A stretch of 64,000 nt of DNA. Source: Adineta vaga. Taxonomy: Eukaryota > Animalia > Rotifera. A program made the position numbers and the translations under genes. Where the stretch lies: assembly GCA_021613535.1 (NCBI GenBank), contig CP075497.1, positions 7,874,001 through 7,938,000 of the forward strand, given 5' to 3'. The notes under the pieces were generated by a model. It had not been told where the DNA came from and searched no databases. It worked only from the letters and a program-made list of their open reading frames with translations. This document shows positions 18,836-46,173 of this stretch, piece by piece. Numbering within the stretch: the stretch's first letter is position 1; the number at the start of each line of letters is the position of its first letter.

Positions 18836-19188
18836 TGCTGAATTCAATTGGAAAAAAAAGAAACTTTTCCTGATAAATATATAAGAATAAATGAGACAAT
18901 AATCTAGAAAAGAAAAATCACATGAAGTAAATTGTACGATAGAAAATTTTGTTCTCTTTTCTCTGAATGCATATATATATATATATGTATCGGCCATTTT
19001 ACCCGTCTATCAAATAAATGGACGAGTAAGCGAAGAAAGAAAAAGCTAACCGCAGTAAGGGTTCAACTTACCGGACTGATACTTGAACTGATGGAGCAAG
19101 TGTGAGTGCGCACAAACATTGGTGGTCTCTTTTCTTTCACTTAAAGTGAAGAGAAAAATATGCATAAACATACGTACATACACGCATA

Positions 19189-19590
19189 CCCAGGTCAAAA
19201 CGTGTCCATCGGATCCTGCCGGACACCTTTCAAATCCGTTGTCAAACGGATGATCGGATCCGGTCGGCCACTTGTCAACGGATTCCGATGCAATCCATCA
19301 ACTTCCCTTGGTATCCGCTTATCGGATCCGACACTTTCCGACAAGATACATAAATTCGGAACCGATCAGATCCGATTCCCATATTCGACTGTTTCTGATC
19401 AGATCCGATGTAATCCGGTGTCAAGAAATTATCGGAATTTACAGTTTCACATGACACCGAATTCCGAGAAAATCCGTTCAGTTACTGCTATCAGAACTTG
19501 TCGGATTCTACAGGAACACAGGAGTTCCTTCGATCGGATTTTAACGCTGTCCGACAATATAGATCCGACAAGAACTTATCACAGGTAAAT
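19189..19590. repeat. Left-end subterminal repeats (ATCCG/CGGAT, TTCCG/CGGAA, both orientations), outer copy
   Basis: Many ATCGGATCC, GGATTCCGA and AGATCCGA motifs in a GC-richer 400-bp block next to the TIR. This is typical CACTA subterminal architecture. Confidence 0.85.
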
Positions 19591-21044
19591 GTTGGAAACA
19601 ATCGGAAAGTTACAGACGTCATTTAGCATAATGGTTAAACCTTAGTGAAATAAATAATAATGCCTAATTACATTTGCAACTTAATACGATATGGTTTGTC
19701 AAGCGAAATCGAACTTGATAGTGATTATGGTTATATGTATGCCAAATACAAGAATAATTCTGAAATGTTGGTAATTACAAGTAGTCATCATATACCGAGA
19801 AAAGAATTGCTTGAGTGTTAAACAATATATCAGAGGGATGGCAGGTTGTTTTTGGTATTGATTATACTATTATACGTTGACGCAGAAGAAGAAAATAATT
19901 TCTGGAAGAGAAATTATTAGAAATGATTTCAGATTGTGATTTTTCACTTTTAAAAAGAGATAGAAAACCAATGATTAAAAACAGCTGAAATTGGATAGAA
20001 ACTACGAAAAGGTATCCGAAATCGTGATAAAATCAGTAATATTCAAGTTGTAATTAAATCTTGATATCTAGGGATATCTAATGAATCTTATAAAATTTTG
20101 AATTTTTGAAAATCCAATATTCTAGTATTTACTTTGGATTCTTCAGGATATCTTATCTTTCTTATTAAATGCTAGTGCTGTTTAACCGTCTGTATTGAGT
20201 TTTGATCAACACAATATAACCTAATCTCTATTAGTGGAGATCGATTGAAATTCGTATCACCTCAGTTACTATGCTTTAACATAGTGGTCATACAGAAAGG
20301 ATAAACAAAGATTATTTATTTATAACTTATTATTGAGAGTGGATCTTGATTGAATATTATTGATAATCGTCGAATATTGAGTAAAATCTAATACAAACAA
20401 CGTGAACTCTCTCTGTGATCTTAAGCTATTGGACAGATATCAGACTATAACGATATTTTTTTGAATTAACTACAGATAGTTCCAAATAAATCTTTGATCA
20501 TATAGTCGATTCTAAAGTAATTTTTTCGTAAAAACTACTTGTAAACGACTATGATGAATGGTGCATTGATCTTTGCTTAAAGAAAATCTAATCAATATCT
20601 ATATTGGTCACATTTCAGTAAATATCTGACTTTATTTTTGCTGGTTATAATGTCCATGGTATAAATTTTGTATATTATTCATTTAATATTATGTAATGGA
20701 TCACAATCAACTGTATTTTGTCATTAAATTCTGAGAAGATGTCTGTTAAAAAGTCAATATTAAAAAATCATGTTCCGAACAGCTATATTGCAAGTTAGCT
20801 GCTTTTATCTGGTGACATCTATACATCGTATATTCATTGTAAGATGTACTTTCTATAAAATTTGAATATCTTGCTTATGTTTCTATAATAATAACAAGAT
20901 ATAGATCCCTATTACAATGTTAAATGCTTTCTTTTGATTTTCATTTATTTTAGATATCTGAATGTAAACATATTACTAGTGAAAGAAATAGTTTTAACGT
21001 TTCAATTTTTGTTTTTATTCAAAGATTTTATCATTAGGTTGAAT

Positions 21045-24000
21045 ATGGATTTTGATCTTGGGCAACAACTTGAATTTGTCGAAAAAAGAAACTTTAAAAG
21101 ATCAATGGAATATTATGAAAAAAAGAAAAAAAAACGAAAATTTTATTGTGAAGAAGTACCAAATGAAAATGAATCATCTGATGCTATTTCTTTACTTCCA
21201 TCTCAAATTGATTTTACATCAAAACTCACACTAAATGACGAAAACAATAGTTTCTTGGAAAGACAGATGAACGACAATAGTTTGAAATATCAAGAGAATT
21301 TTGACAATAAAAATCGTTTAGAAGTTATCGAGATAGATAATAATCCGATTATTCATGATTCATTAAGTATTAATAGTTCATTATGGTTTGATGAATTTGA
21401 GATTACTCCTGAAAATTTATTACATTATTACACAAGCGTTTCGACCAAAGAATTTTGTTTGAAATTACTGATTTTCTTAAGAAATTCTCACACATGTAAG
21501 TTGCAAGCAAATCATTTATTATCATTTATTAGTTCAATACTTCCATCGCCAAATAATGTACCGAAGAAAATGGAAAATCTTTTACAACAATTAGAAATAG
21601 AAAGCAATACTTTCAAGAAACGTATGTTATGTACAAAATGTAATAGTTATGTACCACTTACGACAAGATCTTGTTTGAAATGTTCATCGAATGATTTTAG
21701 AAATTTTGCTTTCATATATGATATAGATATTGAAGAATATATCAAGAATATTTATATACGATTGAAAGTTGAAATCGATGAATATCGAAATCAACTTCGT
21801 TTGATGAATGATACAGATGGAAGTAATGATATAGGATTTAATTATCTTTATCAAGAATTACTGAAATATAATGTACATGATAATTTTATTACATTTTTGC
21901 TACATCTTGATGGTATTAGTTTATCCAAATCATCAAATATGAAGATGTGGTTGTTTTCCGGTTCAATAATCGAATTAAAGCCTCAATTACGTAGTCGTCG
22001 TTATAACAATGTTCTTTTCTCTTTTTGGTTTAGCTATAAAGAACCTGATGCGAAAATTTGGTTACGAAATTGTATGAACGTGATCAAAGTCATAAAAACG
22101 AAAGGTTAGATATGATTAAAATAGATCTTTTCCTATTCAGTTGGATTAGTGAGTTTTTTTGATAAAAGAAGTAAGGAAAAATGTTTTTTATGTAATTCAG
22201 AATTTTAACCATCGATTAATATCTAACAATACGTCTTACCAATGAAAACAATCTATTTCTCGTTTTGTTTTTCAACATATGTATGTATTGATCGTAAAAA
22301 CTATCGAGTACATCAGGAAGAAGAGAAAGAATGTTTAATCTATGATGAACAATATGATTTATATTAGAAAAATATAAACTTTTGCCGTTATTAAGACAGG
22401 AAAGTTGATTATCTTATGCTAACAGAATTATGAAAATAAAAATTATAAATCAATATAGAACAGTTAATATAATTTCAGATGAGTACTGAGTTCTGATTTT
22501 TCGAAAGAATCTTTTTATCTGTAGTTATTTTCGTACATGTTTATATTATATTAGTTTATTCTCTACCAAATACAATTAAATTCAGCTTATTTTTTATATT
22601 AACGCAATTATCATCAGTTTCGATAAGATAGAACGAATAGTGTATATATTTTATTTGTTTTAGGAATAATAATCAATGAAACACAGCGTATTAATATAAA
22701 ATTCCTATCAATCACTGGTGATTCACCAGCATTAAGTAAAATTCTTGAATTTAATGGACACGGTGGCTATTACTGTTGTAATTTTTGCTATACGCGTGGT
22801 GTCAATGTTGAAAAGAAAAGACAATACTTTTACGAAAAAAAAGTACTTCTTCGTTTTCCCGAAAAATATTACAAACAGTCAGAACAAGCTGAAAGATTAA
22901 AAGAAAAAGTTTGTGGACATAAAGGTGAATTATTGTTACAATACTTTTAAAATAATGTACTTACCGAGATATTCTTTGTAGCATATGATTCTCATAAGTT
23001 TATAAAAATATTTGAATAAAGAAATAAATTGTTATGTAAAAATACAAAGATTTCCAATGTAATTACATATTATTTCTGTAGAATTTGCTTAAGTAGATTA
23101 GAATTACAACAGCTTTTAACAATAATTTTTAAACTAATAAATATTAAAAATATTCAAAGAAGATTTTTCAAGAAAGATAGATTCAACTTTTCTATTTAAA
23201 TCATACAATATTTGTAATTTTAGGTATTTCGATTCTACAAGATATACTTGATGCTCCATTACCACATGCCATTTTAATCGATTACCAACATGTGACTTTG
23301 TTACGTCATGCGAAAACTGTTTTCGCTGAACTTTATAAACAATTTAAACCAAAAGAACGTGAACGATTCGATAACAGATTGAAGTATCAAGTATTTCCAC
23401 ATTTTTTTCATCGAAAGATGAAACCTTTCAAGGAGTTTTCATTCATAAAAGCAGTAGAATTACGAAATATTCTGTTTTATGGATTTTTACCATTATCGTT
23501 AGAGTTTATTAATATTCGACAACTATCTCATTTCGCTCTGTTTATTTGTTCGATCAGATTGTATCATTCACAGCCTTCTGTGTTTGGTGATGCAACACAA
23601 GGAATTGCTAGTAAATTATTCAATAAATATTACGAGGACCACAAAATATTTTATGAAAATATTCAAAATTACGTTTTACATATGCATCGCCATTTCGATA
23701 CACAATATCTAAATTATGGTTCTTTGGGAAATATTGGATGTTTCCATCAAGAAGATCTTATTGGTCACATAAGCAAAAACGTACATGGCTCCACCTATTA
23801 TTCTGATTTGATAGTACATTACTATAATATAGATTTTCATTTACACTCACATACTTTTCATACACAACTTGAAACAATTTCAAAACCAACAGACGTTAAA
23901 GTTGATATCAATCTTCATGATTATCCTATTATCATACAGTATCATGACAAATTATGCACGTGTTCAAATCGTCTAAATTGCATTTCGATTTATAGGCGAT

Positions 24001-24293
24001 GTCTTATACGTAATCATATGTTTCATTCGTTAATTTATAACAAAAGAGGAAAATCCAATAGTTATTTCATATCTTATTATGAATCATCAAATGATACTAA
24101 ATATTTTGGAAAAATTATATTATTTTTCTCATTTCTTACCACGAATTATGCTGTTATTCAACGTCATATTCAAAATAACAACTTCAGCTGTTTTTTCAAA
24201 TCATCATCATATTTTTCTTTACTAGAAAAACCATTAGATAGTTTCTTTAGTCTTTTATCCAAACAACCCCAGGTGATTCGATCCGACCGGTAG
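21045..24293 (+). pseudogene. Transposase of the outer copy, 3'-truncated by the inner insertion (exons 21045-22104, 22664-22924, 23224-24293)
   Basis: Same sequence as the inner transposase up to ...LSKQP. The last 37 aa are replaced by QVIRSDR* read from the inner right end. The displaced 3' tail lies at 37894-38009. Confidence 0.85.
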
Positions 24294-24530
24294 ATCCGAC
24301 AGGATCTTATCAGATCCGACATCGGATTGCATCGGAATCAGTCGGATTACCATACAAATCCGACCGGAACCCAACCGACTTACACCGGAATCCTAACCAA
24401 CGGATTCCGACGCGGATTGCACCGGACGGAATCCGACAGGAACTCCTCATAGAACAATGTCAGATTTCATCAGAATCCCGACTACGGAAAACACTGGATA
24501 TTGCCAGTATCCGACCGCTTCTTATCGGAA
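24268..24530. repeat. Right-end subterminal repeats (ATCCGA/TCGGAT), inner copy
   Basis: GATCCGAC, TCGGATT and CGGAATCC motifs clustered next to the TIR. Same motif family as the left end. Confidence 0.85.
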
Positions 24531-24568
24531 AAAGAGAAGCAAATCCAGCAATCAGCAACTTCCCCCGA

Positions 24569-26120
24569 GATTACACCTAGATTACACCAGATTACACCCA
24601 GATTACACTAGATTACACCTAGATTGCGGCATATTTTTCACGATTCCACCTATATTACACCTAGATTACACCAAACTACACCTAGATTACACGAGATGAC
24701 ACCCAGATTACACGAGATTACACCCAGATTACACGAGATTACACCTAGATTACACCAAATTACACCTAGATTGCGGCATATTTTTCACGATTCCACCTAT
24801 ATTACACCTAGATTTCACCTAGATTACACCAGATTACACCTAGATTGCGGCATATTTTTCACGATTCCAACTATATTACACCTAGATTACACCAAATTAC
24901 ACCTAGATTACACCTAGATTACACGAGATGACACCCAGATTACACGAGATTACACCCAGATTACACGAGATTACACCTAGATTACACCAAATTACACCTA
25001 GATTGCGGCATATTTTTCACGATTCCACCTATATTACACCTAGATTTCACCTAGATTACACCAGATTACACCTAGATTGCCGCATATTTTTCACGATTTC
25101 ACCTATATTACACCTATATTACACCAGATTACACCCAGATTACACCTAGATTGCGGCATATTTTTCACGATTCCAACTATATTACACCTAGATTACACCA
25201 AATTACACCTAGATTACACCTAGATTACACGAGATGACACCCAGATTACACGAGATTACACCCAGATTACACCAAATTACACCTAGATTGCGGCATATTT
25301 TTCACGATTCCACCTATATTACACCTAGATTTCACCTAGATTACACCAGATTACACCTAGATTGCGGCATATTTTTCACGATTCCAACTATATTACACCT
25401 AGATTACACCAAATTACACCTAGATTACACCTAGATTACACGAGATGACACCCAGATTACACGAGATTACACCCAGATTACACGAGATTACACCTAGATT
25501 ACACCAGATTACACCTAGATTACACGAGATTCCACCCGGATTACACCAGATTACACCCAGATTACACTAGATTACACCTAGATTGCGGCATATTTTTCAC
25601 GATTCCAACTATATTACACCTAGATTACACCAAACTACACCTAGATTACACGAGATGACACCCAGATTACACGAGATTACACCCAGATTACACGAGATTA
25701 CACCTAGATTACACCAAATTACACCTAGATTGCGGCATATTTTTCACGATTCCACCTATATTACACCTAGATTTCACCTAGATTACACCAGATTACACCT
25801 AGATTGCCGCATATTTTTCACGATTTCACCTATATTACACCTATATTACACCAGATTACACCCAGATTACACTAGATTACACCTAGATTGCGGCATATTT
25901 TTCACGATTCCACCTATATTACACCTAGATTACACGAGATTACACCAGATTACACCTAGATTACACGAGATTCCACCCGGATAACACCAGATTACACCTA
26001 GATTACACCAAATTACACCTAGATTGCGGCATATTTTTCACGATTCCACCTATATTACACCTAGATTACACGAGATTACACCAGATTACACCTATATTAC
26101 CTCAGATTACGCCTTGATTA
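24569..26120 (+). repeat. GATTACACC(T/C)A 9-10-bp satellite with higher-order structure, inner copy
   Basis: Tandem GATTACACCTA/GATTACACCCA/GATTACACGA variants are interrupted 13 times by TTGCGGCATATTTTTCACGATTCC(A)..TAT. The interruptions start at about 24624, 24771, 24845, 25003, 25077, 25151, 25288, 25362, 25583, 25730, 25804, 25888 and 26024. Confidence 0.95.
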
Positions 26121-26145
26121 TAGTATATTTTTCAAGATTAACCCT

Positions 26146-26663
26146 GATTACGCGCAAGAAATGTAATCTGTAATCTAGATTACGGCGAAGTGAAATGATG
26201 CTGGAAAAGTGAGCGGTATATATAGGCGCTGAGGTGTAATCTAGATTACGCGCAAGAAATGTAATCTGTAATCTAGATTGCGACGAAGCGAAATGATGCT
26301 GGAAAAGTGAGCGGTATATATAGGCGCTGAGGTGTAATCTAGATTACGCGCAAGAAATGTAATCTGTAATCTAGATTGCGACGAAGCGAAATGATGCTGC
26401 AAAAGTGAGTGGTATATATAGGCGCTGAGGTGTAATCTAGATTACGCGCAATAAATGTAATCTGTAATCTAGATTGCGACGAAGTGAAATGATGCTGGAA
26501 AAGTGAGCGGTATATATAGGCGCTGAGGTGTAATCTAGATTACGCGCAATAAATGTAATCTGTAATCTAGATTACGGCGAAGTGAAATGATGCTGGAAAA
26601 GTGAGCGGTATATATAGGCGCTGAGGTGTAATCTGGATTACGCGCAATAAATGTAATCTGTAA
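26146..26663 (+). repeat. 98-bp minisatellite, about 5.3 copies, inner copy
   Basis: Unit starts at 26146, 26244, 26342, 26440, 26538 and 26636. Each unit has GTAATCTAGATT(A/G)C (near-)palindromes and GGTATATATAGGCG. Confidence 0.95.
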
Positions 26664-27558
26664 CCGAGAATATTGTTATCACGGTAGGTCGCACAAAAAA
26701 AACCTTTTCGGAGACGATACGTCGTAATCGTTGTAGCAGATGTTAATCTGAGAAGTTTTGTATGTCGTGTGTTTCTATGATTGCTTTGATTTAGTGAAAG
26801 ATGGAGAAGGGCAACATGAAATATGTTCATATAGGTACAGGATATGTGATTTAGTTTACGTTGAAATTTAATCGTGCCATGTAGAATATCGGGATTAACA
26901 GGAACGAACGTTTGTAGTCAGTAATACATGGTGAAAGATATGGGTATATTTGAGTGAATGAGAACACAAATGGTAGGATTATTCTGCTTTAATCGTCAAA
27001 GTATGACGAAAGAGGCTGGTACTTATTTCTTCAATGAGTTGACTATGTAATGGTATAGGTGGTTGGATGCAAACTGAAAAGTAATCGTTTCATCGAAAAG
27101 AATGAACTGAATGTAATCAATGCAATACGTATCAGTTCTTAGTGTAGTTGACTTGTTTAGTTTTGTAGTATTAAGTTAGAATTTTGTTTTTTAAATGATA
27201 GTAGGGCTTTCTGTTCTGTAAGGAGATTTAAGAAAGTTTACGAAATGTATGCATTGTAATAGACGGTCGTGATGGTGAAACTCCGCGAGGTAACGACATC
27301 TGTTGCTCCTTTATATGTACATGTATGGTATTCTTTTTTAAATTAATAAATTTCTGCAAAATTAATATTCGACTGATTCGATTTCTATTTGAATGTTCTT
27401 GAACGATTACAGTGAATTAGGAACAAAAACCTCTATTGAACTGCAAAGTCTTCATTGGTTTGTTATTCCAGATGAATAAATACACCTGGATCGCAATACA
27501 TCTTCGATTGTTTCTTTAGTTGCTGTATTTTAAAATTTTTATTTTATTTTGGTCGATA

Positions 27559-28504
27559 ATGGTTCGAAAGAAAAGTGTTGTGAAACGTTCAAATGATGAA
27601 AAAGAAAATGATAATCCACTTTCCGAAAATGGTAAACGTAAAACTGCTCTTTTGTTATGTACAATTAGCACTGTTTTTGTAATGGATTCTAACTATTGAA
27701 TTAATGAATTTAGATAGTCCACTTGTAGCTGGTCAAAAACGATCAATTGAATTAGTTGATACAAATACTGTTGATGATAAAGAAATTGAAATCAAGAATT
27801 TGAAAAGACGATGTGCTGATCTGGAATATCGTGTTGAAATTCTAGAAAAAACTTGTTCTGGTAAGTTTGTAAGTTTTGATCGTATTTGTATTGTATTTTT
27901 CCAGTAATTCCTCAAGATATGGTGAGTATCCAAGAATTATGTGAAGAAATATCACAAAACTCGAATAATAATAAAGATGGTATTGCAGCAGGCGGTGATA
28001 TTAGTGGTTTTATGACAGGTGATATTGATGGTATTGTTCCAATGAATGTTCAGGATGTTGTAGTCGATTATAATGATACTGTTATTCCAACAAAGAATGA
28101 TAATAATGCTACTATAACATGTTCTGATAATGATGACACAACAGGACGTGGTTTTTCAACATTTACGATTGATAATAAAATATTGACTTCGCTGAAAAAA
28201 GATAGCAAGACAACAACTGCTCGTTCAATTCTTAAATATCTGTTTCCTGATCCACAATTTAACTGTAAACTTTCTGATGTTGATAAATTAATTGTTGATG
28301 AAATCATCAGTAAGTTAATCTTTGTTTATTTCTATATTCGTTTAATTGCATTACATAGAGTACGTCGAAGAAATGCATCCCGACGATACAGCAACAACTA
28401 CAGCAAAAGTCAAACATTCGATGTCAAATTATTTTGGTTCTATTAATCACAAGAAAAAGAAAGCGTTATTTCGATTAAATAAAAATCTTAAAACAAGCAA
28501 ATAA
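27559..28504 (+). CDS. Transposon accessory gene 2: coiled coil plus BEN-like domain, about 256 aa, 4 exons (27559-27631, 27714-27860, 27905-28309, 28359-28504), inner copy
   Basis: Three phase-1 GT-AG introns (82, 44 and 49 bp) give an open frame. It has a coiled coil 'EIEIKNLKRRCADLEYRVEILEK' and a C-terminal 'TTTARSILKYLFP...DVDKLIVDEIIKYVEEMHP...KVKHSMSNYFGSINHKKKK' that resembles the BEN helix pattern. Confidence 0.7.
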
Positions 28505-29688
28505 ACGTTCTCGGAGATAAATAATAAGATTTTCTTTGTGTTTTATATGTGAAACACGCTTTCGCCTTCTTTTGGTTTGTTTTCTTTACACAACTGTTTG
28601 TTTTTTTTTGTTGTTGAAATTCATTCGAAGAATGATTACAATATGAATTATTCTTCCATTTATATCTGTCGATTTTCTCATTATTGATCTTTTTTTCTCA
28701 TTTATGTTTATATTTAAACTCGTTATCAATGAGAGCGCCTCATTGTCGTCTTTTATTTGATTTATTCGAAAATGTCACTATACCAGAAGTACTAGTTTTA
28801 TGAAAAAAGCATTAGAAGTTTTGAATAAAGACTTTTAAAATTAATTGAACGTTTTTTATTTTCATAAACTTAATTGTTTGATCAATATCGAAAGAAACCT
28901 CGTTTCAATATATTCTTTTTGAATACCTCCTATTAAATATTATGAAATATGAGATAGAAATGCAATCTCCAAGAATTACACATGATGAAAGCGTTATACA
29001 AATTTGATTTGATGGAATAGATTCAAGTATTGATCCATTATCATGTTATCTATTAAATCATTTATCCTTAATCAGATACGTCTTTTAAACATAAAGTTGA
29101 TAAGAAATTCAGTTGAAAACACGAACAAGAAAGCATCAAAAACGGAAACGTGAAAGAACATGTTTTGATTAATAAAACTGATACTTATCTTGATGTAAAT
29201 TGTCGCTTTACAGTGAACAAAACAGCATTCTTTCATTATCATTTTCAGACTAACTTTTTATTCATTGAGTCGAAAATATATTGTTTAATAATTAGAATTA
29301 AAAATAAATGAATGATTCATTAGAAAAAATCTTATTTCTTCGAAATGATTTAGATTTTACTATTTCTTTCCCAATAGAATTTGATTACCGTGCATCATTT
29401 AAAGGCTGATGCTAGAAATTTTCTTGATGGTCTTGAACAATCAAATAATTACTTAATATTCCGTTGATTCATAATCAATTCCTAAATAATTATTGCGATT
29501 TCTTCTCAACTAAAATAATCAAATAAGTTTTTTATTTAAACGAAAAAAGGAGAAAAAGAAAACGAAATTGTATTCGATACATTTAAACAATGCTTGCAAT
29601 AAAACAAGCTAATCTTCTTCGTTTTATGCAAGAAAGGTTATGAAGAAGATCCAAATTAGCTCAATATGTATCAAATACAAGAACAGAA

Positions 29689-32234
29689 TTAGTCATTGCA
29701 TAGATTCCGTTCCTCATTGTCCATAGATTGTCGCTTTAAAGCTTTTCCTTGTCTTTTGCGTTCATCGACAAGGAAATCACACATTTTTGGTCGTACTAAC
29801 TTTGCATAACAGTTATCATAATATAATGAAGATATTTTGTATTTCACTCGAATCGATTCTAAAGAAAAAATATTTATTTTAATTAAAAAATATACATATT
29901 TGGACACTAATTCCTTGAGGAAGAAATAAAAAAGTTATATTATCATCAAAATACCAAAAGAAACTATATCAGCTTGAATTAAATATTTAAAAAAATGAAC
30001 CTGTCACAAGAGTCTTCCTATATAAAACAAAGTGATCAAAAATTAGATCGACATTCATTTTCACTGATTGCAAGCAAATCAATCTATTCAAAGAAGTTCT
30101 CTGTCGAAATCAATATATAATTCATTCTTAGAATTAGACATATAATTGCTTTCATAAATGTTTGTTTGAAAAACATAGTTTTATTTTCATAATTAAAGAT
30201 TAATACTAAATTAAACAACTGTTTTAAATGTAATCCATTCTAATTACAGCTATGGAAAATCACGATGTTTTCTATTAATTGACTTAGAGATATGTAGATT
30301 TTTCGACATTTCGTTAATAGACAAATAGCAAATACAACAGCAACTCATCTCTCGGTATATCATTCTAGTTGGATATCAGATGATTATCTGCTATAGAAAT
30401 AATCGAAAATATGACATATATTTATTGATACAATCAAAAATCGATCTTGCATTCAATTAAAGATACCTACCGTGAAACAGATGAAAACGTACGGGATCTA
30501 AAGATGGTCGTGCTAGATGACTCCGGGCTGGAGGTAAAATAGAACTACCTAGTTCTTCTGATGTATATAATGTTTTTAAAATTTTTCGTCCGAAATCAAA
30601 TATATCTCTTGCACGAATTTCTAGAAGGTTTTTGTTATCATACATCTTTAAGAAAAAGCATATACTCTATGTAATCAATGGAGCAAATTTGATAATACAT
30701 ACGACTTCTTTAGGAAAAATTTCATCTTTCTCTCGATATGAATCCAAGTTCTGATGAACCTAGAATTTAAAAATAAAAGAATATATCGAATCCAACAACC
30801 ACATATTTGCATATCATTACAGCATGTGGAATCATTTGATTCAATTTCCTAGAGAAACTTGAAAATTTCTTTTCGAGTTGTTGTAAAATTGTGTGATGCA
30901 TATCATCAATTGTTTGATAAACTACCTGAGCTACAAATATATTATGTTTATATTTAAATAATTATAAATGAATTCACATCATTTAAAATCACTTAGATTG
31001 AGAATTTCTTTGGAATCGTTATACATACCTTCGACACTTTCATTTTCTTTATTATTTCCATTACTCATAGTAGTATCTAAAAAGCAATAAGAATAAAATA
31101 TGAACGGATACAATTACATGAGAAATATACGTTGCATTGTTAAAAGATTCACAGCAGATCGACGAATTTCTAAATAAAATAAGTTATATGTTTGATTTCT
31201 TCTTTTAAAGTTTACTAGTACTATATTTACTTTTACTGATTGATAAATCTTTTCGTGTTGTGACATCAGGATAATCGACGTTTTCTAAAATATAAAAGTG
31301 GATGAATACTTGTTTAATATTTAGCCTTGTTTGTAGCTTCTATCAAAATGCTTTCTCAATTGAAAATTTATCTGCTCGTCTGAAAGATTCTAAGATGAAA
31401 ATGGTTCTATAGCATAAATCAATATGAAATGAAAAGGATTATTTCTATACGTTTACCGTCGTTATTCTCAGATGAACACGAAGACAATTTTCTTTTTTTT
31501 GTTGACAGTGATTGCTCTGCAGAAAAAAAATAGAAAAGGCAAATATTATAATTTGTTTCTACGAAAAAAGAAGAATACTCGGTATCTTATACTGAACATT
31601 ATTGTCATTGTTTCTATCATCACCTTGCACATCATCAGTTTCTTCTAGAATATTTAGCGCAAACATTAGATCATGATAAAAAGAAGCAATCAAAATGCTC
31701 GTCATATCGTCAAGCAGAATGATATGAGATAGTATTTACCTTCTTGATCATCATCATCATCATCAGTAGCATTCATCTGTCCCAATTGCAATTGCTCATA
31801 CATTATATTACATTGACTGTATGAACCTATAGAATCAAAACAAAAAGAACATGTATGCGACATGTAATGTATATATGTAGTTCGAGAAATTATCTGAATA
31901 TTATCTTCTCTAACAGGAATTTGATACATTTCTGAGAATTGTATGATATTTAATACTATGTTATTAGTGAACTTTCTCATTGTAATTTACTATTCTGTTA
32001 AATGAGAATATATATATATATCATACCTTTCGCTTCAATTGTTGCACAACGAGAATTCTGACCTTTTCCCACATTTGCTTTATCTTCAATTATCGATCTG
32101 ATACTTGATCGTTTTACTATAAGTAATTCATCATTATCATCAAAACGAAGTAAATAATTTTCTTGACTATATAGATTTGGTTGTGATGGTGAAAACTTTT
32201 TCGGTGCATTTGTTTTTCGTGGAGATCGAATCAT
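29689..32234 (-). CDS. Transposon accessory gene 1: about 11 short exons, acidic/basic linker, coiled coil, C-terminal BEN-like domain, inner copy
   Basis: MIRSPRK...YLLRFDDNDELLIVKRSSI (exon 1) is followed by micro-exons. The end reads 'DIFDFGRKILKTLYTSEELGSSILPP...RPSLDPVRFHLFH|ESIRVKYKI...KLVRPKMCDFLVDERKR', which resembles BEN. The internal exon choice is partly uncertain. Confidence 0.72.
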
Positions 32235-32696
32235 TCTTTATTATATAAAAGTAAAATCTAAAACAAAGGATTTAGGTAAAAAGTATAATGGAATCAAATC
32301 TTAAATAGTATTATCTTATGCTCTGTACTATGCAATTCAAATCATTATATACAATAGATAATACATATTAATACAATATTCTACTACCATAATGTTACAT
32401 TATACTATACATTAGATTACTAGAAGTTGAACATACTTTAAATATCTGAACAAAAGCTTCGAATCTTTTCTTTTTGTGTAATGAAACATGATTTCTGTAC
32501 TTAACATAGTTTAATGGGAAATAATTTCTAATTCAAAAACTCGCAATTGATCTATTTCGATGGTTACTTTCTAGGAATCATATGTATAACAGGATCATTT
32601 CTTTACATAATTGATTGGATTAAGAGAAAAGAGTTGTCTAAAAATGTATTTCTTTAATACATGTAATATAAAAATCGATACTAAAAGACAATACTT

Positions 32697-35600
32697 TTAA
32701 TCGTGTTCATGATATGCAGATACTTCCGTTACAATTAATTGCTGTTGAAACTCAAATGTAATGCAATGCTTGATAACATTATCAATATTAACAACGTCAA
32801 ATAAATCAGATGGTTGTTTGGATAAAAGACTAAAGAAACTATCTAATGGTTTTTCTAGTAAAGAAAAATATGATGATGATTTGAAAAAACAGCTGAAGTT
32901 GTTATTTTGAATATGACGTTGAATAACAGCATAATTCGTGGTAAGAAATGAGAAAAATAATATAATTTTTCCAAAATATTTAGTATCATTTGATGATTCA
33001 TAATAAGATATGAAATAACTATTGGATTTTCCTCTTTTGTTATAAATTAACGAATGAAACATATGATTACGTATAAGACATCGCCTATAAATCGAAATGC
33101 AATTTAGACGATTTGAACACGTGCATAATTTGTCATGATACTGTATGATAATAGGATAATCATGAAGATTGATATCAACTTTAACGTCTGTTGGTTTTGA
33201 AATTGTTTCAAGTTGTGTATGAAAAGTATGTGAGTGTAAATGAAAATCTATATTATAGTAATGTACTATCAAATCAGAATAATAGGTGGAGCCATGTACG
33301 TTTTTGCTTATGTGACCAATAAGATCTTCTTGATGGAAACATCCAATATTTCCCAAAGAACCATAATTTAGATATTGTGTATCGAAATGGCGATGCATAT
33401 GTAAAACGTAATTTTGAATATTTTCATAAAATATTTTGTGGTCCTCGTAATATTTATTGAATAATTTACTAGCAATTCCTTGTGTTGCATCACCAAACAC
33501 AGAAGGCTGTGAATGATACAATCTGATCGAACAAATAAACAGAGCGAAATGAGATAGTTGTCGAATATTAATAAACTCTAACGATAATGGTAAAAATCCA
33601 TAAAACAGAATATTTCGTAATTCTACTGCTTTTATGAATGAAAACTCCTTGAAAGGTTTCATCTTTCGATGAAAAAAATGTGGAAATACTTGATACTTCA
33701 ATCTGTTATCGAATCGTTCACGTTCTTTTGGTTTAAATTGTTTATAAAGTTCAGCGAAAACAGTTTTCGCATGACGTAACAAAGTCACATGTTGGTAATC
33801 GATTAAAATGGCATGTGGTAATGGAGCATCAAGTATATCTTGTAGAATCGAAATACCTAAAATTACAAATATTGTATGATTTAAATAGAAAAGTTGAATC
33901 TATCTTTCTTGAAAAATCTTCTTTGAATATTTTTAATATTTATTAGTTTAAAAATTATTGTTAAAAGCTGTTGTAATTCTAATCTACTTAAGCAAATTCT
34001 ACAGAAATAATATGTAATTACATTGGAAATCTTTGTATTTTTACATAACAATTTATTTCTTTATTCAAATATTTTTATAAACTTATGAGAATCATATGCT
34101 ACAAAGAATATCTCGGTAAGTACATTATTTTAAAAGTATTGTAACAATAATTCACCTTTATGTCCACAAACTTTTTCTTTTAATCTTTCAGCTTGTTCTG
34201 ACTGTTTGTAATATTTTTCGGGAAAACGAAGAAGTACTTTTTTTTCGTAAAAGTATTGTCTTTTCTTTTCAACATTGACACCACGCGTATAGCAAAAATT
34301 ACAACAGTAATAGCCACCGTGTCCATTAAATTCAAGAATTTTACTTAATGCTGGTGAATCACCAGTGATTGATAGGAATTTTATATTAATACGCTGTGTT
34401 TCATTGATTATTATTCCTAAAACAAATAAAATATATACACTATTCGTTCTATCTTATCGAAACTGATGATAATTGCGTTAATATAAAAAATAAGCTGAAT
34501 TTAATTGTATTTGGTAGAGAATAAACTAATATAATATAAACATGTACGAAAATAACTACAGATAAAAAGATTCTTTCGAAAAATCAGAACTCAGTACTCA
34601 TCTGAAATTATATTAACTGTTCTATATTGATTTATAATTTTTATTTTCATAATTCTGTTAGCATAAGATAATCAACTTTCCTGTCTTAATAACGGCAAAA
34701 GTTTATATTTTTCTAATATAAATCATATTGTTCATCATAGATTAAACATTCTTTCTCTTCTTCCTGATGTACTCGATAGTTTTTACGATCAATACATACA
34801 TATGTTGAAAAACAAAACGAGAAATAGATTGTTTTCATTGGTAAGACGTATTGTTAGATATTAATCGATGGTTAAAATTCTGAATTACATAAAAAACATT
34901 TTTCCTTACTTCTTTTATCAAAAAAACTCACTAATCCAACTGAATAGGAAAAGATCTATTTTAATCATATCTAACCTTTCGTTTTTATGACTTTGATCAC
35001 GTTCATACAATTTCGTAACCAAATTTTCGCATCAGGTTCTTTATAGCTAAACCAAAAAGAGAAAAGAACATTGTTATAACGACGACTACGTAATTGAGGC
35101 TTTAATTCGATTATTGAACCGGAAAACAACCACATCTTCATATTTGATGATTTGGATAAACTAATACCATCAAGATGTAGCAAAAATGTAATAAAATTAT
35201 CATGTACATTATATTTCAGTAATTCTTGATAAAGATAATTAAATCCTATATCATTACTTCCATCTGTATCATTCATCAAACGAAGTTGATTTCGATATTC
35301 ATCGATTTCAACTTTCAATCGTATATAAATATTCTTGATATATTCTTCAATATCTATATCATATATGAAAGCAAAATTTCTAAAATCATTCGATGAACAT
35401 TTCAAACAAGATCTTGTCGTAAGTGGTACATAACTATTACATTTTGTACATAACATACGTTTCTTGAAAGTATTGCTTTCTATTTCTAATTGTTGTAAAA
35501 GATTTTCCATTTTCTTCGGTACATTATTTGGCGATGGAAGTATTGAACTAATAAATGATAATAAATGATTTGCTTGCAACTTACATGTGTGAGAATTTCT

Positions 35601-36035
35601 TAAGAAAATCAGTAATTTCAAACAAAATTCTTTGGTCGAAACGCTTGTGTAATAATGTAATAAATTTTCAGGAGTAATCTCAAATTCATCAAACCATAAT
35701 GAACTATTAATACTTAATGAATCATGAATAATCGGATTATTATCTATCTCGATAACTTCTAAACGATTTTTATTGTCAAAATTCTCTTGATATTTCAAAC
35801 TATTGTCGTTCATCTGTCTTTCCAAGAAACTATTGTTTTCGTCATTTAGTGTGAGTTTTGATGTAAAATCAATTTGAGATGGAAGTAAAGAAATAGCATC
35901 AGATGATTCATTTTCATTTGGTACTTCTTCACAATAAAATTTTCGTTTTTTTTTCTTTTTTTCATAATATTCCATTGATCTTTTAAAGTTTCTTTTTTCG
36001 ACAAATTCAAGTTGTTGCCCAAGATCAAAATCCAT
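32697..36035 (-). CDS. Intact EnSpm/CACTA TnpD-like (Transposase_21 family) DDE transposase, about 826 aa, 3 exons (36035-34976, 34416-34156, 33856-32697)
   Basis: Motifs CTKC..CLKC, 'LHLDGISLSKSS..MW....IELKPQLR', 'ITGDSPALSK...GHGGYYCCNFC', 'LIDYQHVTL', 'KAVELRNILFY', 'YVLHMHRH' and terminal 'YHEHD'. Canonical splice sites keep the frame open (2481 nt). Confidence 0.88.
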
Positions 36036-37489
36036 ATTCAACCTAATGATAAAATCTTTGAATAAAAACAAAAATTGAAACGTTAAAACTATTTCTTTCA
36101 CTAGTAATATGTTTACATTCAGATATCTAAAATAAATGAAAATCAAAAGAAAGCATTTAACATTGTAATAGGGATCTATATCTTGTTATTATTATAGAAA
36201 CATAAGCAAGATATTCAAATTTTATAGAAAGTACATCTTACAATGAATATACGATGTATAGATGTCACCAGATAAAAGCAGCTAACTTGCAATATAGCTG
36301 TTCGGAACATGATTTTTTAATATTGACTTTTTAACAGACATCTTCTCAGAATTTAATGACAAAATACAGTTGATTGTGATCCATTACATAATATTAAATG
36401 AATAATATACAAAATTTATACCATGGACATTATAACCAGCAAAAATAAAGTCAGATATTTACTGAAATGTGACCAATATAGATATTGATTAGATTTTCTT
36501 TAAGCAAAGATCAATGCACCATTCATCATAGTCGTTTACAAGTAGTTTTTACGAAAAAATTACTTTAGAATCGACTATATGATCAAAGATTTATTTGGAA
36601 CTATCTGTAGTTAATTCAAAAAAATATCGTTATAGTCTGATATCTGTCCAATAGCTTAAGATCACAGAGAGAGTTCACGTTGTTTGTATTAGATTTTACT
36701 CAATATTCGACGATTATCAATAATATTCAATCAAGATCCACTCTCAATAATAAGTTATAAATAAATAATCTTTGTTTATCCTTTCTGTATGACCACTATG
36801 TTAAAGCATAGTAACTGAGGTGATACGAATTTCAATCGATCTCCACTAATAGAGATTAGGTTATATTGTGTTGATCAAAACTCAATACAGACGGTTAAAC
36901 AGCACTAGCATTTAATAAGAAAGATAAGATATCCTGAAGAATCCAAAGTAAATACTAGAATATTGGATTTTCAAAAATTCAAAATTTTATAAGATTCATT
37001 AGATATCCCTAGATATCAAGATTTAATTACAACTTGAATATTACTGATTTTATCACGATTTCGGATACCTTTTCGTAGTTTCTATCCAATTTCAGCTGTT
37101 TTTAATCATTGGTTTTCTATCTCTTTTTAAAAGTGAAAAATCACAATCTGAAATCATTTCTAATAATTTCTCTTCCAGAAATTATTTTCTTCTTCTGCGT
37201 CAACGTATAATAGTATAATCAATACCAAAAACAACCTGCCATCCCTCTGATATATTGTTTAACACTCAAGCAATTCTTTTCTCGGTATATGATGACTACT
37301 TGTAATTACCAACATTTCAGAATTATTCTTGTATTTGGCATACATATAACCATAATCACTATCAAGTTCGATTTCGCTTGACAAACCATATCGTATTAAG
37401 TTGCAAATGTAATTAGGCATTATTATTTATTTCACTAAGGTTTAACCATTATGCTAAATGACGTCTGTAACTTTCCGATTGTTTCCAAC

Positions 37490-37891
37490 ATTTACCTGTG
37501 ATAAGTTCTTGTCGGATCTATATTGTCGGACAGCGTTAAAATCCGATCGAAGGAACTCCTGTGTTCCTGTAGAATCCGACAAGTTCTGATAGCAGTAACT
37601 GAACGGATTTTCTCGGAATTCGGTGTCATGTGAAACTGTAAATTCCGATAATTTCTTGACACCGGATTACATCGGATCTGATCAGAAACAGTCGAATATG
37701 GGAATCGGATCTGATCGGTTCCGAATTTATGTATCTTGTCGGAAAGTGTCGGATCCGATAAGCGGATACCAAGGGAAGTTGATGGATTGCATCGGAATCC
37801 GTTGACAAGTGGCCGACCGGATCCGATCATCCGTTTGACAACGGATTTGAAAGGTGTCCGGCAGGATCCGATGGACACGTTTTGACCTGGG
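37490..37891. repeat. Left-end subterminal repeats, inner copy
   Basis: Reverse complement of 19189-19590. Confidence 0.85.
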
Positions 37892-38471
37892 ACCATCTGA
37901 TTTATTTGACGTTGTTAATATTGATAATGTTATCAAGCATTGCATTACATTTGAGTTTCAACAGCAATTAATTGTAACGGAAGTATCTGCATATCATGAA
38001 CACGATTAAAAGTATTGTCTTTTAGTATCGATTTTTATATTACATGTATTAAAGAAATACATTTTTAGACAACTCTTTTCTCTTAATCCAATCAATTATG
38101 TAAAGAAATGATCCTGTTATACATATGATTCCTAGAAAGTAACCATCGAAATAGATCAATTGCGAGTTTTTGAATTAGAAATTATTTCCCATTAAACTAT
38201 GTTAAGTACAGAAATCATGTTTCATTACACAAAAAGAAAAGATTCGAAGCTTTTGTTCAGATATTTAAAGTATGTTCAACTTCTAGTAATCTAATGTATA
38301 GTATAATGTAACATTATGGTAGTAGAATATTGTATTAATATGTATTATCTATTGTATATAATGATTTGAATTGCATAGTACAGAGCATAAGATAATACTA
38401 TTTAAGATTTGATTCCATTATACTTTTTACCTAAATCCTTTGTTTTAGATTTTACTTTTATATAATAAAGA

Positions 38472-41017
38472 ATGATTCGATCTCCACGAAAAACAAATGC
38501 ACCGAAAAAGTTTTCACCATCACAACCAAATCTATATAGTCAAGAAAATTATTTACTTCGTTTTGATGATAATGATGAATTACTTATAGTAAAACGATCA
38601 AGTATCAGATCGATAATTGAAGATAAAGCAAATGTGGGAAAAGGTCAGAATTCTCGTTGTGCAACAATTGAAGCGAAAGGTATGATATATATATATATTC
38701 TCATTTAACAGAATAGTAAATTACAATGAGAAAGTTCACTAATAACATAGTATTAAATATCATACAATTCTCAGAAATGTATCAAATTCCTGTTAGAGAA
38801 GATAATATTCAGATAATTTCTCGAACTACATATATACATTACATGTCGCATACATGTTCTTTTTGTTTTGATTCTATAGGTTCATACAGTCAATGTAATA
38901 TAATGTATGAGCAATTGCAATTGGGACAGATGAATGCTACTGATGATGATGATGATGATCAAGAAGGTAAATACTATCTCATATCATTCTGCTTGACGAT
39001 ATGACGAGCATTTTGATTGCTTCTTTTTATCATGATCTAATGTTTGCGCTAAATATTCTAGAAGAAACTGATGATGTGCAAGGTGATGATAGAAACAATG
39101 ACAATAATGTTCAGTATAAGATACCGAGTATTCTTCTTTTTTCGTAGAAACAAATTATAATATTTGCCTTTTCTATTTTTTTTCTGCAGAGCAATCACTG
39201 TCAACAAAAAAAAGAAAATTGTCTTCGTGTTCATCTGAGAATAACGACGGTAAACGTATAGAAATAATCCTTTTCATTTCATATTGATTTATGCTATAGA
39301 ACCATTTTCATCTTAGAATCTTTCAGACGAGCAGATAAATTTTCAATTGAGAAAGCATTTTGATAGAAGCTACAAACAAGGCTAAATATTAAACAAGTAT
39401 TCATCCACTTTTATATTTTAGAAAACGTCGATTATCCTGATGTCACAACACGAAAAGATTTATCAATCAGTAAAAGTAAATATAGTACTAGTAAACTTTA
39501 AAAGAAGAAATCAAACATATAACTTATTTTATTTAGAAATTCGTCGATCTGCTGTGAATCTTTTAACAATGCAACGTATATTTCTCATGTAATTGTATCC
39601 GTTCATATTTTATTCTTATTGCTTTTTAGATACTACTATGAGTAATGGAAATAATAAAGAAAATGAAAGTGTCGAAGGTATGTATAACGATTCCAAAGAA
39701 ATTCTCAATCTAAGTGATTTTAAATGATGTGAATTCATTTATAATTATTTAAATATAAACATAATATATTTGTAGCTCAGGTAGTTTATCAAACAATTGA
39801 TGATATGCATCACACAATTTTACAACAACTCGAAAAGAAATTTTCAAGTTTCTCTAGGAAATTGAATCAAATGATTCCACATGCTGTAATGATATGCAAA
39901 TATGTGGTTGTTGGATTCGATATATTCTTTTATTTTTAAATTCTAGGTTCATCAGAACTTGGATTCATATCGAGAGAAAGATGAAATTTTTCCTAAAGAA
40001 GTCGTATGTATTATCAAATTTGCTCCATTGATTACATAGAGTATATGCTTTTTCTTAAAGATGTATGATAACAAAAACCTTCTAGAAATTCGTGCAAGAG
40101 ATATATTTGATTTCGGACGAAAAATTTTAAAAACATTATATACATCAGAAGAACTAGGTAGTTCTATTTTACCTCCAGCCCGGAGTCATCTAGCACGACC
40201 ATCTTTAGATCCCGTACGTTTTCATCTGTTTCACGGTAGGTATCTTTAATTGAATGCAAGATCGATTTTTGATTGTATCAATAAATATATGTCATATTTT
40301 CGATTATTTCTATAGCAGATAATCATCTGATATCCAACTAGAATGATATACCGAGAGATGAGTTGCTGTTGTATTTGCTATTTGTCTATTAACGAAATGT
40401 CGAAAAATCTACATATCTCTAAGTCAATTAATAGAAAACATCGTGATTTTCCATAGCTGTAATTAGAATGGATTACATTTAAAACAGTTGTTTAATTTAG
40501 TATTAATCTTTAATTATGAAAATAAAACTATGTTTTTCAAACAAACATTTATGAAAGCAATTATATGTCTAATTCTAAGAATGAATTATATATTGATTTC
40601 GACAGAGAACTTCTTTGAATAGATTGATTTGCTTGCAATCAGTGAAAATGAATGTCGATCTAATTTTTGATCACTTTGTTTTATATAGGAAGACTCTTGT
40701 GACAGGTTCATTTTTTTAAATATTTAATTCAAGCTGATATAGTTTCTTTTGGTATTTTGATGATAATATAACTTTTTTATTTCTTCCTCAAGGAATTAGT
40801 GTCCAAATATGTATATTTTTTAATTAAAATAAATATTTTTTCTTTAGAATCGATTCGAGTGAAATACAAAATATCTTCATTATATTATGATAACTGTTAT
40901 GCAAAGTTAGTACGACCAAAAATGTGTGATTTCCTTGTCGATGAACGCAAAAGACAAGGAAAAGCTTTAAAGCGACAATCTATGGACAATGAGGAACGGA
41001 ATCTATGCAATGACTAA
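38472..41017 (+). CDS. Transposon accessory gene 1 (BEN-like), outer copy
   Basis: Reverse complement of 29689-32234, with identical ORF translations. Confidence 0.72.
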
Positions 41018-42199
41018 TTCTGTTCTTGTATTTGATACATATTGAGCTAATTTGGATCTTCTTCATAACCTTTCTTGCATAAAACGAAGAAGATTAGCTT
41101 GTTTTATTGCAAGCATTGTTTAAATGTATCGAATACAATTTCGTTTTCTTTTTCTCCTTTTTTCGTTTAAATAAAAAACTTATTTGATTATTTTAGTTGA
41201 GAAGAAATCGCAATAATTATTTAGGAATTGATTATGAATCAACGGAATATTAAGTAATTATTTGATTGTTCAAGACCATCAAGAAAATTTCTAGCATCAG
41301 CCTTTAAATGATGCACGGTAATCAAATTCTATTGGGAAAGAAATAGTAAAATCTAAATCATTTCGAAGAAATAAGATTTTTTCTAATGAATCATTCATTT
41401 ATTTTTAATTCTAATTATTAAACAATATATTTTCGACTCAATGAATAAAAAGTTAGTCTGAAAATGATAATGAAAGAATGCTGTTTTGTTCACTGTAAAG
41501 CGACAATTTACATCAAGATAAGTATCAGTTTTATTAATCAAAACATGTTCTTTCACGTTTCCGTTTTTGATGCTTTCTTGTTCGTGTTTTCAACTGAATT
41601 TCTTATCAACTTTATGTTTAAAAGACGTATCTGATTAAGGATAAATGATTTAATAGATAACATGATAATGGATCAATACTTGAATCTATTCCATCAAATC
41701 AAATTTGTATAACGCTTTCATCATGTGTAATTCTTGGAGATTGCATTTCTATCTCATATTTCATAATATTTAATAGGAGGTATTCAAAAAGAATATATTG
41801 AAACGAGGTTTCTTTCGATATTGATCAAACAATTAAGTTTATGAAAATAAAAAACGTTCAATTAATTTTAAAAGTCTTTATTCAAAACTTCTAATGCTTT
41901 TTTCATAAAACTAGTACTTCTGGTATAGTGACATTTTCGAATAAATCAAATAAAAGACGACAATGAGGCGCTCTCATTGATAACGAGTTTAAATATAAAC
42001 ATAAATGAGAAAAAAAGATCAATAATGAGAAAATCGACAGATATAAATGGAAGAATAATTCATATTGTAATCATTCTTCGAATGAATTTCAACAACAAAA
42101 AAACAAACAGTTGTGTAAAGAAAACAAACCAAAAGAAGGCGAAAGCGTGTTTCACATATAAAACACAAAGAAAATCTTATTATTTATCTCCGAGAACGT

Positions 42200-43145
42200 T
42201 TATTTGCTTGTTTTAAGATTTTTATTTAATCGAAATAACGCTTTCTTTTTCTTGTGATTAATAGAACCAAAATAATTTGACATCGAATGTTTGACTTTTG
42301 CTGTAGTTGTTGCTGTATCGTCGGGATGCATTTCTTCGACGTACTCTATGTAATGCAATTAAACGAATATAGAAATAAACAAAGATTAACTTACTGATGA
42401 TTTCATCAACAATTAATTTATCAACATCAGAAAGTTTACAGTTAAATTGTGGATCAGGAAACAGATATTTAAGAATTGAACGAGCAGTTGTTGTCTTGCT
42501 ATCTTTTTTCAGCGAAGTCAATATTTTATTATCAATCGTAAATGTTGAAAAACCACGTCCTGTTGTGTCATCATTATCAGAACATGTTATAGTAGCATTA
42601 TTATCATTCTTTGTTGGAATAACAGTATCATTATAATCGACTACAACATCCTGAACATTCATTGGAACAATACCATCAATATCACCTGTCATAAAACCAC
42701 TAATATCACCGCCTGCTGCAATACCATCTTTATTATTATTCGAGTTTTGTGATATTTCTTCACATAATTCTTGGATACTCACCATATCTTGAGGAATTAC
42801 TGGAAAAATACAATACAAATACGATCAAAACTTACAAACTTACCAGAACAAGTTTTTTCTAGAATTTCAACACGATATTCCAGATCAGCACATCGTCTTT
42901 TCAAATTCTTGATTTCAATTTCTTTATCATCAACAGTATTTGTATCAACTAATTCAATTGATCGTTTTTGACCAGCTACAAGTGGACTATCTAAATTCAT
43001 TAATTCAATAGTTAGAATCCATTACAAAAACAGTGCTAATTGTACATAACAAAAGAGCAGTTTTACGTTTACCATTTTCGGAAAGTGGATTATCATTTTC
43101 TTTTTCATCATTTGAACGTTTCACAACACTTTTCTTTCGAACCAT
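42200..43145 (-). CDS. Transposon accessory gene 2 (coiled coil plus BEN-like), outer copy
   Basis: Reverse complement of 27559-28504. Confidence 0.7.
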
Positions 43146-44040
43146 TATCGACCAAAATAAAATAAAAATTTTAAAATACAGCAACTAAAGAAACAATCGA
43201 AGATGTATTGCGATCCAGGTGTATTTATTCATCTGGAATAACAAACCAATGAAGACTTTGCAGTTCAATAGAGGTTTTTGTTCCTAATTCACTGTAATCG
43301 TTCAAGAACATTCAAATAGAAATCGAATCAGTCGAATATTAATTTTGCAGAAATTTATTAATTTAAAAAAGAATACCATACATGTACATATAAAGGAGCA
43401 ACAGATGTCGTTACCTCGCGGAGTTTCACCATCACGACCGTCTATTACAATGCATACATTTCGTAAACTTTCTTAAATCTCCTTACAGAACAGAAAGCCC
43501 TACTATCATTTAAAAAACAAAATTCTAACTTAATACTACAAAACTAAACAAGTCAACTACACTAAGAACTGATACGTATTGCATTGATTACATTCAGTTC
43601 ATTCTTTTCGATGAAACGATTACTTTTCAGTTTGCATCCAACCACCTATACCATTACATAGTCAACTCATTGAAGAAATAAGTACCAGCCTCTTTCGTCA
43701 TACTTTGACGATTAAAGCAGAATAATCCTACCATTTGTGTTCTCATTCACTCAAATATACCCATATCTTTCACCATGTATTACTGACTACAAACGTTCGT
43801 TCCTGTTAATCCCGATATTCTACATGGCACGATTAAATTTCAACGTAAACTAAATCACATATCCTGTACCTATATGAACATATTTCATGTTGCCCTTCTC
43901 CATCTTTCACTAAATCAAAGCAATCATAGAAACACACGACATACAAAACTTCTCAGATTAACATCTGCTACAACGATTACGACGTATCGTCTCCGAAAAG
44001 GTTTTTTTTGTGCGACCTACCGTGATAACAATATTCTCGG

Positions 44041-44558: not shown

Positions 44559-44583
44559 AGGGTTAATCTTGAAAAATATACTA

Positions 44584-46135: not shown

Positions 46136-46173
46136 TCGGGGGAAGTTGCTGATTGCTGGATTTGCTTCTCTTT

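Follow-up and report, generated by a model that had tools for sequence, protein, structure and literature searches.

Large cut-and-paste transposons rely heavily on accessory DNA-binding proteins to recognise their own ends and to regulate themselves. The maize En/Spm element pairs its TnpD transposase with TnpA, which binds at subterminal repeats, the two-gene PIF/Harbinger transposons carry a Myb/SANT partner, and the Arabidopsis element VANDAL21 encodes VANC, which acts on 5-methylcytosine, together with amplified short motifs. In animals, to our knowledge, almost nothing is known about such elements beyond the transposase, and we know of Mirage elements described with a transposase only. 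Here we analyse a stretch of 64,000 nucleotides (the window) from Adineta vaga, contig C6:7874001-7938000, a bdelloid rotifer and thus a member of a group with unusual transposon control. Positions 24268-37891 of the window are one complete 13.6-kb cut-and-paste mobile unit with a transposase gene and two accessory genes, named here BEN-1 (the minus-strand multi-exon gene, gene 2) and BEN-2 (the plus-strand four-exon gene, gene 3). On balance we think it somewhat probable that this is an autonomous Mirage-like transposon in which BEN-1 is a TnpA-like core partner of the transposase, and BEN-2, together with an array of short repeats, is an add-on regulatory module.

The unit ends in 7-bp inverted repeats, CCCAGGT..ACCTGGG (in a longer reading, CCCAGGTG... 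and ...GACCTGGG), and this inner copy sits inverted within a second, outer copy of the same element at 19189-46436. The boundaries and the parts of the two copies are the following.

24266-24267, no strand: left-hand AC of the target-site duplication around the inner copy, matched at 37892-37893, with the length of 2 bp fixed by the TA/TA of the outer copy
24268-24274, plus strand: left terminal inverted repeat CCCAGGT, the same terminus as in derivatives and relatives
37885-37891, plus strand: right terminal inverted repeat ACCTGGG
19189-24267, minus strand: outer inverted copy, left part, the reverse complement of 32812-37891, with the last transposase exon interrupted by the inner copy
37892-46436, minus strand: outer copy, right part, the reverse complement of 24268-32814, with its own array at about 44030-46140

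In a whole-window repeat search, segments A (19189-24268), B (24268-28607) and C (28603-32814) are repeated in reverse complement, arranged as A' C' B', with 100% identity for each segment. The resulting order A-B-C-A'-C'-B' is the one expected if B-C-A' (24268-37891) inserted, inverted, into the second copy. The undisturbed target site is kept within the inner copy at about 32812-32814, and the insertion breaks the last transposase exon of the outer copy around 37 codons ahead of its stop. The inner copy is bordered by the target-site duplication AC/AC and the outer copy by TA/TA (19187-19188 and 46437-46438). The sole difference between the two 13.6-kb copies is a run of nine versus seven T (2 nt; 28603-28611 versus 42097-42103), which could be a polishing error. 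Mobility follows from the nested second copy: the element is an autonomous DNA transposon, active now or very recently. An initial annotation of this DNA, made by a model from the sequence alone, had placed the element at exactly these coordinates, which the inverted ends and 2-bp duplications match, and its layout of a transposase, a same-strand gene and a convergent four-exon gene is present in full. Its 3-bp duplication had to be rejected: the apparent 3-bp overlap is 2 bp plus one chance base, and the outer copy fits only 2 bp.

Genome-wide searches, covering 6 contigs and 100.8 Mb, returned these two full-length copies only. Deletion derivatives of 2.1 kb with 80–87% identity lie on four other chromosomes (C1, C2, C3 and C5); they retain both ends and the CGGAT subterminal regions, together with one TATA unit and about 13 units of the array, and have none of the three genes. 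One example is L006:482-2607 (C3:112582-114707), with others in L005 and L007-L011; L006 and L010/L011 have common flanks and may thus lie on duplicated chromosome segments. A clean target-site duplication was not found at the older copies. A related full-length family with 64–73% DNA identity lies near both ends of C6, and many family members are found near chromosome ends.

The three genes of the element are arranged as follows.

32697-36035, minus strand: transposase gene in three coding blocks (about 36035-34974, 34440-34140 and 33880-32697), placed by open blocks and DUF1258 similarity
29689-32234, minus strand: BEN-1, ATG at 32234 and stop at 29689, with exons at about 32234-32025, 31827-31730, 31520-31449, 30931-30818, 30759-30703, 30645-30471 and 29858-29689, placed by homology to relatives and public proteins
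27559-28504, plus strand: BEN-2, with exons at about 27559-27630, 27713-27859, 27916-28308 and 28358-28504, equal to the public model P0021

Candidate catalytic sites of the transposase, an enzyme of the DDE type, assigned by eye only, are LHLDG, ITGDSPA and QEDLIGHISK. Downstream of ITGDSPA lies a C(2)C motif (YCCNFCY; CCNFC), and the nearest histidine pair, in HVTLLRH, has a 5-residue spacing. Target-site duplications of Mirage elements are 2 bp and those of the CACTA-Mirage-Chapaev (CMC) superfamily 2–5 bp; the AC/AC and TA/TA pairs found here agree with the Mirage group. The first coding block has a weak match to DUF1258 (21.1 bits, E 2.5e-4; cut-off 33.1), and the transposases of relatives, the nearest of which come from Adineta and Rotaria, reach 28–29 bits or have precomputed matches. 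Pfam DUF1258 represents the Mirage group, which is close to CACTA Transposase_21 (PMC3985635). On these sequence similarities the element probably belongs to the Mirage-like (DUF1258) branch of the CMC superfamily. Its ends, CCCAGGT..ACCTGGG, and those of its relatives are not the CACTA..TAGTG (or CA..TG) termini that define CACTA/En-Spm in the narrow sense, and the earlier label “CACTA element” gives way to Mirage-like. The ratio of non-synonymous to synonymous substitution rates (dN/dS) was calculated against three relatives, with synonymous divergence saturated, and is 0.13–0.16 for the transposase. Public models P0024, P0067, P0079, P0135 and P0136, from Rotaria and A. vaga, fuse the transposase with the same-strand BEN gene; the fusions could be real alternative splicing, as for TnpA/TnpD of En/Spm, or merged annotation.

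Homology supports at least 7 coding exons in BEN-1, the count being a lower bound, where about 11 had been suggested; the acceptor of the last exon is at 29859-29860. The protein consists of a conserved 70-aa N-terminal domain, an acidic/KKRK stretch, a helix and a BEN fold split across the last two exons. The N-terminal domain (32025-32234, minus strand; ENYLLRF..VKRSSI..IEAKG) is 67–73% identical across Adineta lineages with a dN/dS of 0.19–0.38, and no Pfam or atlas family was recognised in it. A profile of the penultimate exon retrieved 107 cluster representatives, in many of which the predicted splice between FH and E-AVRVKY is visible, and all members looked up are from bdelloid rotifers. 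Exons were searched singly, and public proteins of relatives (P0023, P0030 and P0022) served as stand-ins for the family. For the 114-residue member P0023, AlphaFold produced from 51 aligned rows a model with a predicted local distance difference test (pLDDT) score of 95. A Foldseek search of the PDB with this model returned BEN domains (BEND3, BANP, BEND6, Insv and Bsg25A) at all of the 19 best ranks, and VIA-align gives 12 BEN entries at Z 7.5–9.1, with a root-mean-square deviation of 2.5–4.5 Å over 84–99 residues, compared to 3.4 for the best non-BEN chain. Pfam BEN matches 3 of the 33 family members (best E 0.002), and one UniRef entry of the family carries the name “BEN domain-containing protein”. 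The BEN exons have a dN/dS of 0.08–0.22.

The four-exon structure predicted for BEN-2 agrees with P0021, which is deposited as “hypothetical protein I4U23_029736 [Adineta vaga]” and has the further annotated splice forms P0137 and P0138. The protein has a coiled coil at residues 46–91, a disordered stretch at 93–157 and a BEN fold at about 157–240. Its model is weaker, with a mean pLDDT of 63.5 and values of 68–87 across most of the C-terminal domain (residues 161–252). In an exhaustive comparison of this model with 48,161 chains the top five are all BEN, at Z 6.2–7.1, and Pfam BEN aligns to P0021 over profile positions 3–72 of 76 with E 0.02–0.07. The dN/dS of the BEN exons is 0.09–0.27, with one comparison at 0.44. 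One A. steineri copy of BEN-2 (L015:18194-18328) has an in-frame stop within the coiled-coil exon, and that copy may thus be decaying.

Judged from these structural models, both accessory proteins end in a BEN fold. The BEN-like ends suggested for them from the letters alone are borne out at the level of the fold by Foldseek, VIA-align and the exhaustive structure comparison; Pfam gave no BEN match on single exons. BEN is a sequence-specific DNA-binding domain according to the cited literature. Both accessory genes are under purifying selection. A profile–profile comparison of the two BEN families was insignificant (E 0.022 over 39 columns), and close paralogy of BEN-1 and BEN-2 is therefore not claimed.

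Four motif regions surround these genes.

24275-24567, no strand: left subterminal region, 10 CGGAT/ATCCG cores in both orientations, with the longer form ATCCGAC
37490-37884, no strand: right subterminal region, 16 CGGAT/ATCCG cores in both orientations
24568-26120, plus strand: array of about 130 units AGATTACACC(T) (GATTACACC type) in a single orientation at 10–11 bp spacing
26146-26663, plus strand: 5.3 tandem 98-bp units, each with a TATA-like box GGTATATATAGG, a palindrome GTAATCTAGATTAC and inverted array motifs

CGGAT/ATCCG occurs at 33–40 per kb in 24269-24567 and 37490-37891, compared to 0.8–0.9 per kb in the flanks beyond both copies, an enrichment of about 40-fold, and GATTAC/GTAATC at 44–46 per kb in 24568-26663, compared to 0.3–0.8 per kb. 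The two motif families noticed initially, CGGAT at both ends and GATTAC in 24568-26663, are thus both far above chance. The arrays have Tandem Repeats Finder (TRF) scores of 1075–1260 and 952, and across the genome the 21-bp double unit is confined to this element and its derivatives. The array is broken 13 times by the spacer GATTGCGGCATATTTTTCACGATT at distances near multiples of 10.5 bp, so that helical phase is held over 1.55 kb. The 98-bp units, which lie upstream of BEN-2, are candidate promoter/operator units; A. ricciae and A. steineri share their AAAAG..TATATATA core, which there points the same way with respect to BEN-2. Candidate binding sites are the array repeats AGATTACACCT, the ATCCGAC-type subterminal DNA and GTAATCTAGATTAC; the probe ATCGGATCCGAT proposed earlier is absent from the element, in which GGATCCGAT does occur. 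A subterminal variant, CGGATTGCACC (about 24417), is similar to the array motif GATTWCACC, and for this reason the two families of motifs may be related.

A comparative scan of 15 loci in Adineta and Rotaria separates the two accessory genes. BEN-1 accompanies the transposase and the subterminal motifs in every lineage scanned. BEN-2 and the array occur together in 8 lineages, and at least 3 further lineages, which have the transposase and BEN-1, lack both. This pattern points to BEN-1 as the constant partner of the transposase and to BEN-2 plus the array as a linked add-on. In A. ricciae and A. steineri the order is end, array, TATA repeats of about 100 bp, BEN-2, convergent BEN-1, transposase and end. 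The order is similar in Rotaria magnacalcarata, without separate TATA repeats and with a 3.9-kb array of 21-bp units, and R. sordida has BEN-2 and arrays of 75–229 bp in a rearranged locus in which BEN-1 is duplicated. There, on contig L019, each of the two BEN-1 copies is followed by a 75–229-bp repeat array rich in GCTGAATCAGC, and an extra BEN exon and a BEN-2 homologue are present; the element at this locus has probably been duplicated or nested. Four Adineta lineages agree in the GATTWCAC core and in its orientation, and the subterminal motif varies by lineage (ATCCGA, TTCCGG or TACGGT).

Elements without BEN-2 and the array include a 6.1-kb two-gene family in A. vaga, with three copies at 97–98.5% identity, ends CCCAGGTG..CATGGG and the subterminal motif TACGGT, located at L027+L028 positions 9446-15528 (C1:14.02 Mb), C1:170 kb and C1:16.32 Mb. 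Likewise, both are missing at A. vaga C1:15.16M and from an R. magnacalcarata element that ends 520 bp past BEN-1. CACCCA-type repeats, which we take to resemble the A. vaga telomere repeat, lie 100 bp past the end of one two-gene element near 164.5 kb on C1 (reversed L030+L029, 15186-15327). The initial annotation had proposed that one accessory protein reads the terminal motif and the other the array. Related elements fit such a division of one protein per motif; a pairing of BEN-1 with the array fails, as BEN-1 is found without an array in at least three lineages, and the array must pair with BEN-2. That annotation had also named independent occurrence of its gene 2 and the array as an outcome that would speak against its proposal, and the multi-exon gene, if this is the gene 2 it meant, does occur independently of the array.

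In the mechanism we propose, BEN-1 is predicted to bind the subterminal motifs and would help to bring both ends to the transposase, as a functional counterpart of En/Spm TnpA or of the Myb-like partner in Harbinger. BEN-2 is predicted to recognise GATTWCACC, both within the array and in the inverted copies that adjoin every TATA box, which would make BEN-2 and the array a self-contained cis-regulatory module at the left end. The module would most likely regulate the left-end promoter, by dose-dependent auto-repression or by boundary formation, and hence the activity of the element. Through their coiled coils the proteins may form oligomers along sites that all lie on the same helical face.

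Several observations weigh against this scheme. Both proteins fall under the Pfam BEN (PF10523) threshold, BEN-2 with 13.7–15.3 bits compared to a cut-off of 23.2, and are for this reason filed as BEN-fold proteins rather than as curated family members; neither gave a sequence-level match to solved BEN structures. The transposase has an N-terminal zinc-ribbon-like region of its own, which could read the subterminal motifs without BEN-1. The C1:95k lineage, counted among the 8 with both parts, has BEN-2 yet only a weak repeat (53 bp x 3.5), and arrays shift quickly in unit and copy number, as do neutral satellites. The propagation of the two-gene relatives without BEN-2 and the array (three copies, 97–98.5%) implies that the module is dispensable for transposition.

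The rapid change of the arrays leads to a first alternative, in which the array is an expanded, fast-evolving left subterminal region without function and BEN-2 is an array-independent second transposition cofactor or a host-interaction factor. We judge this unlikely. Many CACTA-type elements carry expanded subterminal repeat regions, and the likeness of the subterminal variant CGGATTGCACC to the array units AGATTACACC/AGATTGCGGC would fit such an origin, as would a copy number that differs even between the near-identical copies rel and rel2, the retention of only about 13 units in the derivatives, and a unit sequence and period that differ between genera. What a functionless array leaves unexplained is its strict association with BEN-2, both being present in 8 lineages and both missing from at least 3, the 10.5-bp phase held over 1.55 kb through 13 spacers, the inverted motif copies that adjoin each conserved TATA unit, and the GATTWCAC core and orientation kept between lineages in which BEN-2 is only 35–44% identical.

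The same co-occurrence of BEN-2 and the array could, by analogy, belong to an anti-silencing or insulator system, an animal counterpart of VANDAL VANC that would keep off repressive chromatin or DNA modification. The layout matches, with an element-encoded predicted DNA binder and a private array of likely sites, and chromatin boundaries are the site of action of several BEN proteins, Insensitive and Elba among them. Most of the BEN-only proteins that have been characterised are repressors, however, BEN-2 has no homology to VANC, and two-gene relatives persist without the module at similar copy number. Furthermore, an array on one side only cannot flank the element as a boundary pair. Taken together this makes such a role for the module improbable.

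There is little chance, in our view, that array-bound BEN-2 tethers the excised element to chromatin or the donor region and so favours nearby reinsertion, in the manner of viral episome-maintenance proteins on repeat arrays. The only new insertion seen is into a sister copy, which would fit local reinsertion, and the many phased sites and the coiled coil of BEN-2 are compatible with tethering; the idea is pure analogy based on a single insertion event, and Pfam recognised no chromatin-binding domain in BEN-2. We give hardly any weight to the nested pair being an assembly artefact, or the accessory genes being host genes that lie by chance within a repeat: inverted duplications that are perfectly identical over 13.6 kb are difficult for assemblers and the early Adineta vaga assembly is known for artefactual palindromes, but each junction coincides exactly with an inverted end and has its 2-bp duplication, the sister copy retains an intact target, and the gene order is kept in five species with the genes under purifying selection.

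Returning to the reading of BEN-1 as core partner and BEN-2 plus array as add-on, a broader version can be put forward only tentatively, and we hold it to be doubtful: bdelloid Mirage-like transposons may have gained a “reader plus array” cassette that is portable, in which a BEN protein is coupled to as many as 190 of its own sites, arrayed in helical phase beside tandem promoter units. Without recourse to the host, the cassette would set the chromatin state of the element or control its copy number, through a boundary, anti-silencing or titration, and BEN domains would circulate on animal DNA transposons. No paper on BEN genes on rotifer or other eukaryotic DNA transposons was found in a literature search that was without Repbase reports and most subscription journals. 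If the broader version is true, transposons are a plausible source of host BEN regulators, which bears on the origin of animal BEN factors. The locus places a fold known from host repressors and insulators, in two diverged copies, on an active transposon. Sister lineages with and without BEN-2 and the array provide a natural experiment, and the system is tractable for reader-plus-array tests, since its genes are intact, its two copies are identical, candidate sites are defined and deletion derivatives already exist.

Among described systems, maize En/Spm is probably of the same superfamily (CMC) as the rotifer element and shares with it the large size of an autonomous element and a transposase accompanied by an accessory protein that binds DNA or, in the rotifer, is predicted to. 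In both, dense short motifs lie in both orientations under both ends, and the binding sites, candidate ones in the rotifer, overlap the likely promoter region at one end. The rotifer element differs in its ends (CCCAGGT, not CACTA) and in its duplication (2 bp, not 3); its accessory proteins are BEN-fold and unrelated to TnpA, they are encoded by two separate, partly convergent genes, and there is an extra 2-kb phased array. Mirage of Caenorhabditis is alike in DUF1258 transposase similarity, 2-bp duplication and an animal host, although the rotifer DUF1258 scores are below the Pfam threshold and the placement in CMC is by domain similarity. The PIF/Harbinger transposons resemble the two-gene rotifer relatives in pairing a transposase with one predicted DNA-binding partner, but belong to another superfamily, use another partner fold and have no array module. 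With VANDAL21 only the layout is common, an element-encoded protein and amplified short motifs in the same element; there is no relation to VANC in sequence or fold. The BEN-only factors (Insensitive, Elba1/2, BEND5/6, BANP and the BEN4 domain of BEND3) have the fold that is predicted for the rotifer proteins and likewise a coiled coil or helix before a C-terminal BEN domain, whereas the rotifer proteins are 10–20% identical to them, lie under the Pfam threshold and are transposon-encoded rather than host regulators, with the BEN-1 family found only in bdelloid rotifers.

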